64,000 bases of DNA. Source: Rebecca billardiae RCC1528 (lineage: Eukaryota; Protista; Haptophyta). This document shows, in pieces, positions 55,228 through 62,364 of the stretch (position 1 is its first letter; each line of letters opens with the position of its first letter). A model generated the notes under the pieces. That model made no database searches. It saw nothing but the letters and a program-made list of their open reading frames with translations, and was not told the DNA's origin. The stretch is from NCBI GenBank assembly GCA_965240325.2, contig OZ251226.1:2480001-2544000 (forward strand). The letters run 5' to 3'. The translations under genes and the position numbers were made by a program.

Positions 55228-55342
55228 TGCATGCGCGAGAAGCCGAGAAAAAATAAATCATCGCGCGAATTCTGGCGATGACGATATAAATCTGCATGCA
55301 CGAAGATCGCTGCTCGTCATCAGCCCGTTCGCCACTGCCGCG

Positions 55343-56539
55343 ATGCGCTCGTCATGTCGCGGCGATTGGGCGAGCCGGACGCACCACCTTGCCGGCAAAC
55401 GCGTGCTGGTGACGGGCGGCTGTGGCTACGTGGGCGAGCAGATTGCTCTTCGTCTGCTTGCCCTCGACCCTCCAGTGGCGCACCTGCGCATTCACGACAT
55501 ATCCGGCCCAGGCCCTTGGCCGGGCACCTTTGCCCTGGCAGGGAGCGACCGCGTCGAGTACATACGCGGTGACCTTGCAGCCGGCCCGCCGCCGTGTGAG
55601 GGTATCGATGTGGTGCTGCACTTTGCGAGCTACGGCATGTCCGGTCACGAGATGATCGCCAACCCTTCCAAGATCCGAGCGATAAACGTGGGAGGCACGG
55701 TTCAGCTGCTCGAGTCGGCACGTGCGTGTGGCGCGCGAGCCGTCGTCTACCTCTCGAGCCAGAACGTGGTGTTCGGCGGCAAGCCCATCTACGACGCGGA
55801 CGAGTCTCTCGCGTATTTTCCCGTGGATGAGCACATCGATGAGTACAGTCGGTCCAAGGCCCTCGCCGAAATGGCCGTCCTTCGGGCCGACGACAAGGCA
55901 GGCCTGCGCACTGTCGCCATCCGCCCCGCGTCCATCTACGGCGAGGACGAACGCAAGCACCTTCCTCGCATCGCCCGGAACATCGCCGCTGGCATGTGCA
56001 CGGTGGGCTTTGGCGACCGCCGAGCGCAGTCCGAGTGGGTCCACATCGACAACCTCGCGGACGTGGTGCTGAGCGCCGCGGCGTCGCTGCTGGCCGAGCC
56101 GGAGCTGAGCGGCGAGGTGGGCGGCCAGGCGTTCTTCGTCTCGGACGGCACGCCCATCAACATGCTCGACTTCTTTGCGCCCATCGCCAGCGCCCTCGGC
56201 CTGCCCGCATGCCTGGTGCGCGTGCCGGTGGGCCCCGTCCTCATGTTCGCACGCGCGTGCGAGTTTGTGTGCACCCTCATCCTGCCTGTCGTCAGCCTCG
56301 AGCCGCTGCTCACGCGCACGGAGGTGCTCAAGGTGGCGATTCACCACACCTTTTCGAACAAGAAGGCCGCGCGCATCCTTGGCTATGTGCCGCGCTTCGG
56401 CAGCGAGGACGGAATGCGCCGAGTCGCCGCCGCGTTTGCTGCCAGCGACCTCGCGCGGGACCTTCGCGCTGCCCGGGTGCGCGCCATGATCTCCGCCGCC
56501 ATGTGCTGCGCGCTCGTCGTCGCGCTCGTGCTGCCGTAG
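55343..56539 (+). CDS. SDR42E1: 3-beta-hydroxysteroid dehydrogenase-like extended SDR (SDR42E1-like)
   Basis: VLVTGGCGYVG, HFASYGMSG, INVGGT, YLSSQNVVFGG, YSRSK, RPASIYGEDE, WVHIDNL, GQAFFVSDG, PLLTRTEV, C-terminal TM. The upstream part of ORF 54794.. is TIR read-through. Confidence 0.9.
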   Translation: MRSSCRGDWASRTHHLAGKRVLVTGGCGYVGEQIALRLLALDPPVAHLRIHDISGPGPWPGTFALAGSDRVEYIRGDLAAGPPPCEGIDVVLHFASYGMSGHEMIANPSKIRAINVGGTVQLLESARACGARAVVYLSSQNVVFGGKPIYDADESLAYFPVDEHIDEYSRSKALAEMAVLRADDKAGLRTVAIRPASIYGEDERKHLPRIARNIAAGMCTVGFGDRRAQSEWVHIDNLADVVLSAAASLLAEPELSGEVGGQAFFVSDGTPINMLDFFAPIASALGLPACLVRVPVGPVLMFARACEFVCTLILPVVSLEPLLTRTEVLKVAIHHTFSNKKAARILGYVPRFGSEDGMRRVAAAFAASDLARDLRAARVRAMISAAMCCALVVALVLP

Positions 56540-56817: not shown

Positions 56818-59270
56818 TCACTGGCTTGCCAGCCGCACAGCCGCAAGTAGACATGTCGCCGAGCTGGCGGCGCTTCGGACAGCGTTGGTGACGCCGGCAA
56901 TGGTCGAAACCACCATAAGTCCTCCATACGTGGCAGCGAGCGCGAGGGCGCGCCGAGGCACGCTCGGCGCAGCCGTCGCGGCCAGACCGCTGTCGATGGC
57001 CTCCTTGATGGCGAGGAGCCCGCCCGGGCCCGTCAGCGCGTACAGGTCGAAGCCGCCGGACTCGGTGCGGCGTGCTGTCTTCATGATGTGCGCGAGCACC
57101 GCCGGCTCGGCTGCGTGCAGCGCGCGCGCCGGCGCGGCGAGCACGTGCGTGAGTGCGTGGAGGAGTGTGCCCGAGCGGCGCATCGGCGGCGGCAGCGCGG
57201 CCTTCAGGATCGACGCGTACGACGACGCGACGACACCGTCGACGACGATGTCGCCGTGCAGCGTGATGGGCGCGTACAGCCCCGCGCGCTGCACCTCCGA
57301 AACGGACGTCACAACGGCGGAGACCGCGCCGCTGCCGCCGCCAGAATCGACGACGCTCATTGCCATGCCGACGCGCACGTCGTCAGCGCGCACGTACGCG
57401 CCGTGCGCGAGGCGTGCGAGGTGGTCAGGCGAGAGCTCGAGGGCGTGGCCGCTCGACAGCTCGACGCGCACGAACGCATGCTGCACAGCGGCGCGCCTGT
57501 CCTCGTGCGCGCTCAGGTACACAGTCGAGTACGCCGCACCGCCGTCGACGAGCACGCGCTCGCCCGGCTCGAGCGCGTCCATCCGCTTGGGGCCGGCAGG
57601 CGTCGTCACCGTCGCGTGCGCGGGGAAGCAATCATTATTGCACGTGTAGATTAGCGTGACCGAGTCCTCACACCAGCGGTCGCAATGATTGTCAAGGGTG
57701 CACTGGACACACACGCCTTCCACGCAGCCTCGCAGCAGATCATCATCTGCGTTCTCATGGGCGGCCTTGGTGGAGCAGTCGGCGTTGGCGAGGCACTCGA
57801 CGCAGCTGCCTGCGTCGCATTTGCGCTTCGGGACGACGTAGTGCTCGGTGTAGCAGTTGGCCTCGCAGTCGGCATCGCCGGTGCAGGAGGTTGTCTCCAG
57901 CCGACGGCGTGCTTTGTGGCGCGCTGCATGTCCAGCGTCCACGAATGCGCACGTTGGCTCGAGGCATTCCGCACCGTCCGCGCTCCACGCGGCGCACAGC
58001 GACCGCGGCGAGGGCTCGGTGCAGCCAGGGTCGCCTTCGAAGCAATGGTACACGAAGCACTTGGGTGGCCAGTCCGCGGGCGACGTGCCATTGCCGCGCT
58101 CCGCCAGCCGGCGCTGGCGGTGGTGGTCGTAAGAGTCGGCCGCGTCCAGCCGGCGCAGCCGGCGGCTCGGGCTCTGCGAGAGGACGGTGCCGCTTGAGGT
58201 GATCCAGTACGACGGACCGCCGCCGCCAGACTTCGTCACCTGGTAGTACACGGCGCCATCGATCACCTCGATGGCGACCAGGTAGCCCGACGCCGTCGCC
58301 ATCGACAGCGCAGTGCCCAAGTCCTGGAGCTGGCGGCGGGAGGACGAGCCGCCTTTGCTGATCATCACGGTGCCACTCGTCACGTTGTTGTTGATGGCGT
58401 CGATCACCCCCTGGACCTGTGATAGGTCGACATCGCCCACCTCCACGAGCTGGCGTCCGCCGACCACGCGCAGGCGCCGCCGCGTCTCGTCGTGTTGCGT
58501 CACGCTCACGAAGTTGGCGCCGAACATCACGCCGCGCCCGTTTTTGTCGGTGAGCAGGTTCGAGGCGGAGCGCAGGAATGTCTGATGCAAGGCGCGCGCC
58601 ATCGTCAAGAGCGCGCACAGCGGGCGGGTGGGGTGAGCGCGACTCAGCTGTGGCGCGATTGGCGCGCGTGCTGCAAGGGCGTGCCTCAGGCAGAGCCACG
58701 CTGCAATGGTGATCGCGGTTTGCACGCGCCGATGGCCGCCGCTTGCGTGCCGTGCACACCTCCTTGGTGACGTCGCTCGCGAGGTAGGCAGTGCCAAAGA
58801 TGCACGCGATGAGCGCGACGAATACAGCAGCGAGAACACCAGCAAGGCGCCTGTACCTCTGCCCGCCCTCTCGGTGCTCGAGCATCGCCTGCACCATCGC
58901 CTTCACCTCGGGGGTCGAGTAGCGGTGGTTGCCGTCCTGCGGGGTGGAGCGCAGAGGGAATATGCGTAGATGAGGCGAGTCATGAGTGGCGTATGCGCGA
59001 GACGTGGGGTCGCGCACTTCGGAGGCGCTCTGCGCGAGAGCTGCGCCGCACCAAATCGTAGTCCTTCAGCATCTGCTCCAGCGGGTCGAGTTTTCCGTTA
59101 CCGTCCGCGTCGTACGTGACCACCGATGAGATGGAGGTCAGCCGAGTGCCGCGAGTTTGCTGCCGATCACGCTGCGAGGACGTCGCCGTCCGCTGTGGGC
59201 CAGCTGGCTCGCCCGCAGCGCCGCCGCCGCCGCCAAACATCTGGCCGACAGTGTGAAAGAAGCTCGTCAT
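56818..59270 (-). CDS. Hedgehog-type Hint (Hog) domain protein 1: EF-hand-like, TM, RRL motifs, Cys-rich, Hint, SRR-like, hydrophobic tail (exons 59270-59052, 58936-58760, 58581-56818; ~719 aa)
   Basis: Hint motifs CFPAHATV, LELSPDHL, GLYAPITLHGDIVVDGVVASSYA; EF-hand-like YDADGNGKLD. Two phase-0 GT..AG introns sit at the same positions as in the paralog. Confidence 0.87.
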
Positions 59271-59817
59271 CCTCGGCCTCCCGGCCGGGGGGGGGGGGGA
59301 TACATACGCCTTAACCAAGTGTGCACGTTAAAACATAGTAAACTGTATGGAGATTTGAGATTGCTTCGCTTCGCCCAAATTGAAAATAGTAGTGCTCTGC
59401 CACCAACGCCGACTTCCAGACTTCGTGTCGGCCGCCGACGAATCAGGACACCGCGTCGTCCTACCTGTGTCGTTAAAGCATAGAATGAGTATGACCTCAA
59501 TTAATAATGCTCAAGGGCGCCCATCAAGCTCATAAATACCACGTCGTTAATAGATGCTATGCTGATAATCATCGATGACGTTGTTTTAAATCACACGACA
59601 TATGATACCACATATTATTCGCTGAACTTCCAATAATAAAGTTCAGCAACATCATCAATGGAGATGGTTATTTAAAGAGTGACCATTATGGCGGGCGAAC
59701 CGTCGTAAAATGGTCATCAATAATGGTCACCCCCCTGCTTACAAGTGACCTCACAGTCTCAAGTCAAGAGCCGGGCGGGTCGCCCACACTGCGTCGCAAC
59801 TCGCGAGGACGGGAAGC

Positions 59818-62364
59818 ATGCAGGGCGTCGCCGGGCTTTTCAAGCGCACGGGCAACAATGATGGCGCGTCAGCGCGCGAGCCGGGCGCGACCTCTCGCGC
59901 CAACACAGTGAGGGTCGAGGAGCTCGCGATGTATGACGCGGACAATGACGGCAAGATCGACGCCGTCGAGCGCACGCTCGCGAAGTACGATCTGGTGAGC
60001 GCACGGACGCACAGCCCCTGCAGCTGTCAGCCCATTTGCCCGCATGACCACGTGCGCCATCCCGTCCCGCGCCTGTCCCTCCTGCGTCCTGATGCCCGTG
60101 GCATGCAGAACCACGATGGCAAGTTCTCAGCTGCGGAGGTCAAGACGATCTGCGCCGAGGTGATGGCCGAGAAGAAGGCCAAGCACAAGTACCAGCTCCT
60201 GAGCGCCGTCCTGTGCGTGTCCATAGCTGTGCTTCTGGGCGCGATGTTTGGCGCTGCCGTGCTGGCGGGCGAGCTCTCAAAGGAGGTCCGCCGCACGCGC
60301 GCGAGCACGTGCGCCAGTCCCTGGCGCCCACGAGTCTCGTCATCACGAGTGCAGACAGACAGACAGCCCCACTCGCGCCGATCATCGGCTCATGCGACCC
60401 GTGACACGCGCGCGGGACGGGCGACGCACCAGGTATTCGTCGACGGCGAGACGGGCGTGCAGCTCGGGGCGGATGGCCGGCCCACGCGCACGACGGGTGC
60501 CCGCCCGCACATCGAGCTGCACGACATGCGGCGCAGGCGGCTGGTCGAGCACGACGGCCGCCGTCTGGTCGAGGTGGCCGAAGTGAACTCGAGTGTAATG
60601 AGCTCTGTGCTCAAGCTCATGAATACGTCGGGCCAGACCACGGGCACCGTCGAGGTCGGGACCTCGAATGTGCGCCGCCGCAGCCTCCGCCAGCTCGCAG
60701 AGGTCACCTCAAAGACGCTCTACGCCACCGGCGAGCTCATCAGGTCCTACGTCAAGCGCGTCGACGGCCAGGACGAGACGTGGTACGTCTTCCGGTCGGG
60801 TGTCCCCGGCGACTCGACGCTGTACACGGTCACGGGCGACGGCCAGGTGCTCCAATCGGATCCCAACGTCAATGACCGCCTCCGTCGCCTGTCTGAGAGC
60901 GAGTCCCTCGATGATCACGAGCGGCGTAGGCTGTACGAGGCTGGGGGCGCGTCAAGACCGGAGCCGTGCCTCATCTACCACTGCTTCGAGGGCGATGCGC
61001 GCTGCTCCGACCCGGCGCCGCGCTCGCTGTGCAAGGCGTGGAGCGCAGACGGCGAGATCTGTGACGAGCCGGCGTGCGCGTACGTGGTGTCGTCTGCCGT
61101 GCAGGCTGGGGGGCGGCGGCGCCTGTCCACCGCGGACCCGGTCACCGCGTGCACCAGCTCTGCCGACTGCCAGTCGGGCAACGCGAACAAGCTGCAGTGC
61201 TTGAACTTGATTATTGGCGGCAACGGCACAGGCATCTGCATCGAGTGTGTGAGCAATGCCCACTGCGAAGCACTCCCGCACGGCTGCTATCTCGAGCAGG
61301 GGGATATCCCTGAGCGGCTGTGCGACCTCTCCAACGGCGAGTGCGTGCAATGCCTGCAAGACAGCGACTGCGACGCTGTCACCGGCGCCGGGAATCTGGA
61401 CTTCTTTTGCGACAACAGCACGAGGCGGTGCGTCCAGTGTGTAACTGCCGACGACTGCGGCGGAGGCATGGTATGCTCGATCTATGGTTTCTGCCTCGTT
61501 GCCAACTGCTTCCCCGCGCACGCGACGGTGACGACGCCTGCCGGCCCCAAGCGGATGGACGCGCTCGAGCCGGGCGAGCGCGTGCTCGTCGACGGCGGTG
61601 CGGCGTACTCGACCGTGTACCTGAGCGCGCACGAGGACAGGCGCGCCGATGTGCAGCATGCGTTCGTGCGCGTCGAGCTGTCGAGCGGCCACGCCCTCGA
61701 GCTCTCGCCCGACCACCTCGCACGCCTCGCGCACGGCGCGTACGTGCGCGCTGACGACGTGCGCGTCGGCATGGCAATGAGCGTCGTCGATTCTGGCGGC
61801 GGCAGCGGCGCGGTCTCCGCCGTTGTGACGTCCGTTTCGGAGGTGCAGCGCGCGGGGCTGTACGCGCCCATCACGCTGCACGGCGACATCGTCGTCGACG
61901 GTGTCGTCGCGTCGTCGTACGCGTCGATCCTGAAGGCCGCGCTGCCGCCGCCGATGCGCCGCTCGGGCACACTCCTCCACACAATCACGCACGTGCTCGC
62001 AGCGCCGATGCGCGCGCTGCACGCAGCCGAGCCGGCGGTGCTCGCGCACATCATGAAGACAGCACGCCGAACCGAGTCCGGCGGCTTCGACCTGTACGCG
62101 CTGACGGGCCCGGGCGGGCTCCTCGCCATCAAGGAGGCCATGGACCAAGGTCTGGCCGTGACGGCTGCGCCGAGCGTGCCTCGGCGCGCGCTCGCGCTCG
62201 CTGCCACGTATGGATGGCTGATGGTGGTTGCCACCATCGCCGGTGCGGCGAATACGCTCGGCGTCGTCACCCGCTTCGTGACGACAGCATCTGGCGCCAT
62301 GACAGCCGCAGCTGCCGCGCTACACCTTGGAGGAGCGTTGGCGTCGTGTGTGCCGAACGTTTGA
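59818..62364 (+). CDS. Hedgehog-type Hint (Hog) domain protein 2, paralog of protein 1 (exons 59818-59994, 60109-60285, 60433-62364; ~761 aa)
   Basis: Same architecture: YDADNDGKID, YDL|NHDGKFS, TM, RRL motifs, CxxC-rich repeats, Hint from Cys codon 61507. Both introns are in-frame and stop-free, so the ORF track shows 848 aa. Confidence 0.87.
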   Translation: MQGVAGLFKRTGNNDGASAREPGATSRANTVRVEELAMYDADNDGKIDAVERTLAKYDLVSARTHSPCSCQPICPHDHVRHPVPRLSLLRPDARGMQNHDGKFSAAEVKTICAEVMAEKKAKHKYQLLSAVLCVSIAVLLGAMFGAAVLAGELSKEVRRTRASTCASPWRPRVSSSRVQTDRQPHSRRSSAHATRDTRAGRATHQVFVDGETGVQLGADGRPTRTTGARPHIELHDMRRRRLVEHDGRRLVEVAEVNSSVMSSVLKLMNTSGQTTGTVEVGTSNVRRRSLRQLAEVTSKTLYATGELIRSYVKRVDGQDETWYVFRSGVPGDSTLYTVTGDGQVLQSDPNVNDRLRRLSESESLDDHERRRLYEAGGASRPEPCLIYHCFEGDARCSDPAPRSLCKAWSADGEICDEPACAYVVSSAVQAGGRRRLSTADPVTACTSSADCQSGNANKLQCLNLIIGGNGTGICIECVSNAHCEALPHGCYLEQGDIPERLCDLSNGECVQCLQDSDCDAVTGAGNLDFFCDNSTRRCVQCVTADDCGGGMVCSIYGFCLVANCFPAHATVTTPAGPKRMDALEPGERVLVDGGAAYSTVYLSAHEDRRADVQHAFVRVELSSGHALELSPDHLARLAHGAYVRADDVRVGMAMSVVDSGGGSGAVSAVVTSVSEVQRAGLYAPITLHGDIVVDGVVASSYASILKAALPPPMRRSGTLLHTITHVLAAPMRALHAAEPAVLAHIMKTARRTESGGFDLYALTGPGGLLAIKEAMDQGLAVTAAPSVPRRALALAATYGWLMVVATIAGAANTLGVVTRFVTTASGAMTAAAAALHLGGALASCVPNV

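Follow-up and report, generated by a model that had tools for sequence, protein, structure and literature searches.

The window, the 64,000 nucleotides (nt) of DNA analysed here, is part of contig OZ251226.1 of the haptophyte Rebecca billardiae RCC1528 (C8:2480001-2544000 in the 72-Mb genome of 41 contigs; C8, C3, C12 and the like are contig labels). It carries two genes for proteins that end in a Hedgehog-type Hog domain, the shorter paralogue S (56818..59270, minus strand) and the longer paralogue L (59818..62364, plus strand), arranged head-to-head. Very probably, as judged from the sequences, gene conversion between these inverted duplicates within the locus homogenises the Hog-coding part, while the front halves, which encode a Cys-rich cargo, diverge. 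All results are based on one assembly of the genome.

The inverted repeat and its 5' edge

A repeat search found a single inverted pair in the region, 56855-57630 on the minus strand, which is the Hog-coding 3' part of gene S, and 61507-62282 on the plus strand, the corresponding part of gene L. These arms of 776 nt are 95 % complementary and enclose a spacer of 3876 nt. BLAST of the two arms gave an identity of 97.2 % over 737 nt, with the 97 % cores at 56894-57630 and 61507-62243; 21 of the 737 positions were mismatched, and the tails of the genes differed too. In the pairwise alignment of S and L the DNA had no similarity before TGCTTCCCC, and from TGCTTCCCC on it was almost free of mismatches. 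The preliminary description of this DNA had let the identity start exactly at the catalytic Cys codon, and a maximum chi-square scan, with significance judged against 1000 permutations, placed the breakpoint on the T of TGC (chi2 381 vs a permutation maximum of 22). This T is position 0, from which the tract offsets (+n nt) are counted. The codon for the nucleophile Cys of the Hint domain, at 57628..57630 (minus strand) in S and at 61507..61509 (plus strand) in L, thus forms the 5' edge of the homogenised tract. Mismatches amounted to 35 of 60 nt in the final 20 aligned upstream codons vs 0 of 60 nt in the 20 codons from Cys, and the third-position mismatch was 0.52 before the Cys codon and 0.037 from this codon on. 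TGC is codon 1 of the Pfam Hint match in both genes and aligns with Cys1 of the C-terminal part of Drosophila Hedgehog (Hh-C; 6tyy/1at0). The 3' edge is less sharp, the identity passing through 96, 72 and 44 % across about 100 nt. The coordinates, tract length and spacer given in the preliminary description agreed with the repeat search and the alignment, and so did the diverged upstream halves with unequal numbers of Cys repeats: the two cargoes are homologous, yet 46-47 % identical over the aligned segment adjoining the Hog domain, and L holds one additional Cys repeat of about 35 amino acids.

Three gene pairs in the genome

Ten Hint genes are present in the genome, six of which make three head-to-head pairs, at C8 (the window), C3:4240659-4246127 and C12:2759161-2764377. 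The two-gene unit of C8 is 88-90 % identical to that of C3 and has the opposite orientation on the contig. The match is limited to the two coding sequences and dips in the introns; intergenic region, 3' untranslated regions (UTRs) and flanks could not be aligned. A comparison of the flanks of the C8, C3 and C12 pairs for synteny revealed nothing in common beyond the two coding sequences. Partners in the C8, C3 and C12 pairs have 97.1, 97.0 and 98.4 % identity over the Hog tract, respectively, whereas the values are 92-93 % between C8 and C3 and 77-79 % versus C12. Before the Cys codon, orthologues share 88.6-88.9 % (C8-C3) or 63-66 % (versus C12) and pair partners about 50 %. Maximum chi-square breakpoints in the three pairs were located at 0, -2 and 0 nt from the T of TGC. 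The 3' edge differs by locus: at C8 and C3 it falls at about +700 to +780 nt, within the last hydrophobic stretch and ahead of the gene-specific tails, at C12 at +968 nt, beyond the stop codon in the 3' UTR.

Conversion was assessed by the maximum chi-square scan, by informative-site patterns and by approximately unbiased (AU) tests. The Hog DNA tree clusters by locus, and a clade of the S orthologues was rejected (AU p = 3e-34). In the cargo protein tree an S clade stands against an L clade with a support of 100/100, and the grouping of C8S with C8L was rejected (p = 1e-6). The synonymous divergence (dS) within pairs is 0.022-0.038 in the Hog part and 1.16-1.45 in the cargo, a step of about 40-fold across the Cys codon. 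Between the C8 and C3 orthologues dS is 0.15-0.21 in Hog and cargo alike (Hog 0.15-0.18), hence the silent sites of the Hog part are not intrinsically slow; this equality is also without any sign of conversion between the C8 and C3 loci. Among the four genes at C8 and C3 (S and L of each), the informative sites from +1 to +665 comprise 33 of locus pattern and 0 of orthologue pattern, those from +732 to +810 0 of locus pattern and 29 of orthologue pattern, and cross-pattern sites are absent anywhere (0). The switch from locus to orthologue pattern falls between +665 and +732 nt. As in concerted evolution, the partners are closer to each other than to their orthologues, silent sites included, and the topologies differ across the breakpoint. 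Judged by these patterns, the arms were homogenised after the loci had separated, independently at each locus. The G+C content at third codon positions (GC3) is 0.89-0.93 inside the tract and 0.79-0.85 upstream, an excess that fits GC-biased conversion.

That gene conversion keeps a constant Hint unit behind varying N-terminal halves had already been proposed in the preliminary description, and the conflicting trees, the dS step and the recurrence at three loci bear this out. The genome-wide check named there gave the same result for the edge: all 10 Hint genes have a common 5' homology edge at the Cys codon and different N-termini.

Identity of the Hog domain

The Pfam Hint family PF01079 matches S and L over the gathering score (E 3.4e-25 and 4.1e-25), and a phmmer comparison with Drosophila Hh-C (6tyy, 1at0) placed the query Cys 1 on Hh-C residue 1 (E 5e-7). 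Relative to 6td6/6tyy the catalytic motifs are kept, with H-E-D-R on M-D-R (Asp kept) and S-P-D-H on T-P-A-H (Thr replaced by Ser, His kept). Where Hh-C has Cys143 (S-C-Y-A), S and L have Ser (S-S-Y-A). About 120-135 residues follow the Hint match before the protein ends, with no downstream extein, and a Pfam search of both proteins for a homing endonuclease or other domain gave Hint only. By this Hint match and the C-terminal extension up to the protein end, S and L are Hog proteins as Burglin 2008 (PMC2362128) used the term, consisting of Hint and a C-terminal region similar to the adduct or sterol recognition region (ARR/SRR), and not inteins. The Hog domain would cleave at the Cys and release the cargo.

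Position of the 5' edge and proposed mechanism

A constraint profile was obtained by comparing the C8 and C3 orthologues in 40-codon windows. The last 40 codons of the S cargo, which encode the final Cys repeat (57631..57750, minus strand), are the least constrained segment, with a nonsynonymous divergence (dN) of 0.31, a dS of 0.30 and indels; the corresponding 40 codons of L (61387..61506, plus strand) have dN 0.27, dS 0.27 and indels as well. Against these values of dN 0.27-0.31 at a dN/dS of about 1, the first 40 Hog codons have a dN of 0.023. The freest segment of the protein thus directly adjoins the most constrained one at the Cys codon.

In the history that we propose, S and L would be old inverted duplicates, placed head-to-head, of a gene whose product is anchored in the membrane, rich in Cys and ended by a Hog domain. 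Their front halves would have parted long ago, and ectopic gene conversion, a non-reciprocal recombination between the two arms on one chromosome, would have homogenised the Hog part of about 0.7 kb repeatedly. The near-neutral final Cys repeat of the cargo, with its indels, would offer no homology for an extension of the heteroduplex upstream, and the first approximately 40 Hog codons, as the most constrained ones, would not allow mutation to wear the edge inward. Most likely the 5' edge is held by this meeting of two selective regimes, heterology and constraint, and owes its exactness to the direct contact between the freest and the most constrained segment.

Alternative explanations

Several points weigh against this account. 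Conversion is read from the net result in one assembly, and no event was witnessed directly. The raised GC3 is equally explicable by codon bias. The C8 and C12 pairs are 100 % identical over the first 90-200 nt, where a plain homology barrier predicts a lower identity; the full identity next to the edge could have arisen by chance from the latest tract. Heterology and constraint together fit the nucleotide-exact edge, short of proof, and with Ser at the Hh-C Cys143 site autoprocessing stands as a prediction. As the data give the net result, a single recent copying of a Hog cassette at each locus, perhaps guided by the domain junction, might replace recurrent conversion, and the residual within-pair dS is indeed alike at the three loci (0.02-0.04). 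Such a one-off replacement is improbable: it must have happened three times independently, at about the same age and each time with an identical 5' edge, and the C12 3' edge (+968) is unlike that of C8 and C3 (about +700-780), as repeated tracts of variable length predict. Mechanistically, it would still be gene conversion. We also regard it as unlikely that the Hog module is a constant unit of the whole genome, kept uniform behind any cargo, with the Cys-codon edge itself under selection. Cargoes made together would then need the same Hog processing, or the Hog fragments would act together after cleavage, and the four single Hog genes described below would be homogenised along with the three pairs.

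The within-pair likeness, the conflicting trees, the dS values and the site patterns together rule out a collapse in the assembly as well as purifying selection acting alone. No part of the family is better conserved than the Hog domain (dN 0.02-0.06), and its GC3 is about 0.9, as expected if purifying selection and codon bias kept the Hog parts alike with no recombination at all. This is very hard to reconcile with a Hog dS of 0.15-0.18 between the C8-C3 orthologues vs 0.02-0.04 between pair partners, with 33 sites grouping by locus and none by orthology, and with the rejection of the orthologue topology at p = 3e-34. For arms that are a collapsed or mis-joined repeat speaks the general risk of repeats in assemblies alone; such an artefact has a negligible probability, as 21 of 737 positions distinguish the arms, the tails are distinct, the contig measures 3.5 Mb, and the same architecture with locus-specific substitutions occurs on two further contigs.

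The inverted arms had also been suggested to flip the 3.9-kb interval 57631-61506. This suggestion found no support, since inversion would remake the same two genes. With a length of 776 nt, an identity of 95-97 % and a distance of 3.9 kb, the inverted arms are well able to support a crossover, which might act as a switch or maintain two structural alleles, and the C3 unit is opposite in orientation to that of C8; the flanks of the two are unrelated and hence uninformative on flipping. However, the start codons of both genes lie in the interval, together with the DNA between them and the two cargo halves, and the Hog domains encoded by the arms are almost identical. With whole front halves inside and near-identical arms outside, inversion cannot serve as an expression switch: a flip would swap just the last 25-45 codons and the 3' UTRs, nothing would be switched, and neither a gene nor a promoter is reconnected as in an invertible switch. 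At C8 and C3 the S front half occurs with the S tail and the L front half with the L tail (29 orthologue-pattern and 0 cross-pattern sites from +732 to +810), which is a weak test with two loci in the same state; the intact tail linkage implies no net crossover since those loci split. An invertible segment is accordingly given a slim chance, whereas a neutral inversion polymorphism is possible.

Gene models and neighbourhood

Three exons are predicted for each gene, 59270-59052, 58936-58760 and 58581-56818 for S (about 719 amino acids) and 59818-59994, 60109-60285 and 60433-62364 for L (about 761 amino acids), the last one including the stop codon. Both models were inferred from open reading frames (ORFs) and from GT-AG junctions read in the sequence. 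Exon 2 has 177 nt in S and in L; the C3 and C12 orthologues keep this exon and its junctions, and the introns are divergent. Both L introns, 59995-60108 (114 nt) and 60286-60432 (147 nt), are in frame and free of stop codons, and the gene can be read as one uninterrupted ORF of 848 amino acids. A protein derived from this ORF would contain 87 spurious residues from retained introns. The dip in C8-C3 identity at 60313-60410 coincides with L intron 2. An ancestral intron at the Cys codon was considered and rejected: neither AG nor GT stands at the junction, and the ORF runs through it without a break.

Both genes encode, in this order, a short N-terminal part that includes an EF-hand-like loop, a single hydrophobic, transmembrane (TM) segment, the Cys-rich cargo and the Hog domain. 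The gene-specific C-terminal tails, at 56821..56898 (minus strand) in S and 62239..62361 (plus strand) in L, lie outside the converted tract; sites in the S tail follow orthology, not locus. Between the start codons lies an intergenic region of 547 nt (59271..59817), which cannot be aligned with its C3 counterpart and is presumed, solely from the gene arrangement, to act as a shared bidirectional promoter. The cargo halves, 57631-58581 (minus strand) and 60433-61506 (plus strand), have several conserved R-R-(R)-L motifs and share a strongly conserved Y-H-C-F-E-G-D...S-L-C..W-S-A-D block. These motifs and the block may represent processing sites or an undescribed domain. A Pfam search with the cargo was without match, and a protein atlas gave no usable match.

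A gene of the 3-beta-hydroxysteroid dehydrogenase family (55301-56536, plus strand; PF01073, E 5e-49) is convergent with gene S and stops about 280 nt from the S stop codon. A sterol enzyme beside a domain resembling the sterol-transferring Hedgehog type is suggestive, but probably a coincidence, because the C3 and C12 pairs have no flanks in common with C8. A dispersed element of about 280 nt, similar to miniature inverted-repeat transposable elements or short interspersed nuclear elements (MITE/SINE-like), has at least 854 candidate copies genome-wide, many of them 93-100 % identical. Copies lie beside the C3 pair (L023:6556-7127, L026:326-616) and the C12 pair (near 2766337-2766669) and are unrelated to the Hog pairs. 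A transposon consisting of the two-gene unit of 5.5 kb, bounded by the arms or by flanking repeats, was rejected; the repeats of about 280 nt are dispersed and absent at C8.

Other Hog genes

The four single Hog genes are located at C24:1466235, C23:31487, C3:2319723 and C17:2026862. Their front consists of a signal peptide, an extensin-like Pro-rich stretch (SPPP / PPSPIV repeat) and a small Cys knot. On these different contigs the genes share 90-96 % of their DNA sequence between Cys codon and stop and 35-60 % before the Cys codon, with the exception of C23 vs C17, whose upstream parts are mostly 65-90 % identical. The Hog dS is star-like at 0.13-0.18; the cargo dS ranges from 0.34 to more than 1 in Pro-rich sequence that is hard to align. 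These values hint at an occasional interchromosomal homogenisation among the single Hog genes, which we take as a lead only.

Outside this genome, a word search yielded P0001 as the sole relative, an S-type gene with 60 % identity on a 2.5-kb contig, and a metagenome scan yielded distant Hog genes only, with 31-44 % identity. Eukaryote contigs of metagenomes (JAAUYH01..., JADWZK01...) whose GC content is about 48-50 % have Hog genes in clusters, and the N-termini of these genes are unrelated; there are 4 copies on L034, 5 copies on L038 and 2 tandem copies on L049. Within the L049 tandem pair the DNA identity steps from 38 to 86 % at the Cys codon.

Relation to known systems

Conversion between closely linked inverted duplicates is known from Drosophila Hsp70Aa/Ab and Amy-p/Amy-d and from the palindromes of primate Y chromosomes (PMC3924832, PMC3199776). 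As in these systems, the mirror-image paralogues S and L lie a few kb apart and exceed the likeness of orthologues, silent sites included. Unlike there, conversion covers one domain-coding part only, and its edge is nucleotide-exact at a catalytic codon and repeated at three dispersed pairs in one genome. Closer in extent is the inverted Dlx pair of Capitella teleta, for which a conversion confined to the homeobox, over about 150 bp, was reported on GENECONV evidence alone (PMC3199776). In both cases conversion is limited to the most conserved domain while the rest diverges, but the tract in the Hog pairs measures 0.7-1 kb and is backed by strongly supported trees that conflict and by a dS step of 40-fold. 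With the invertible switches of phase variation the Hog pair shares inverted repeats that bound a segment containing promoters; in contrast to these switches, the 5' gene parts lie wholly inside the segment, and neither a link to a recombinase nor a second orientation is in evidence. The pair adds a tidy example to the known cases of gene conversion between inverted duplicates and reveals no new mechanism.

Hog proteins of protists, including Hog1-3 of the haptophyte Pleurochrysis, were described by Burglin 2008 (PMC2362128). Like those, S and L have a Hedgehog-type Hog domain behind a cargo that is secreted or membrane-bound and contains conserved cysteines. In the haptophyte paralogues the Hog domain is far better conserved than the cargo, for which Burglin saw the cause in a faster evolution upstream (PMC2362128). 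The DNA of S and L differs from that account in that the Hog part is, on the present evidence, also actively homogenised, and a head-to-head arrangement is not known from the Pleurochrysis sequences. A full-text literature search found no paper that pairs concerted evolution with the Hog domain. Three copies of one inverted pair, with an exact 5' and a variable 3' edge, form a clean natural experiment on the reach of conversion. Conversion offers a concrete reason why protist paralogues appear so much better conserved in the Hog domain than in the cargo, and trees of Hog domains in such genomes reflect the history of the locus rather than that of the gene.

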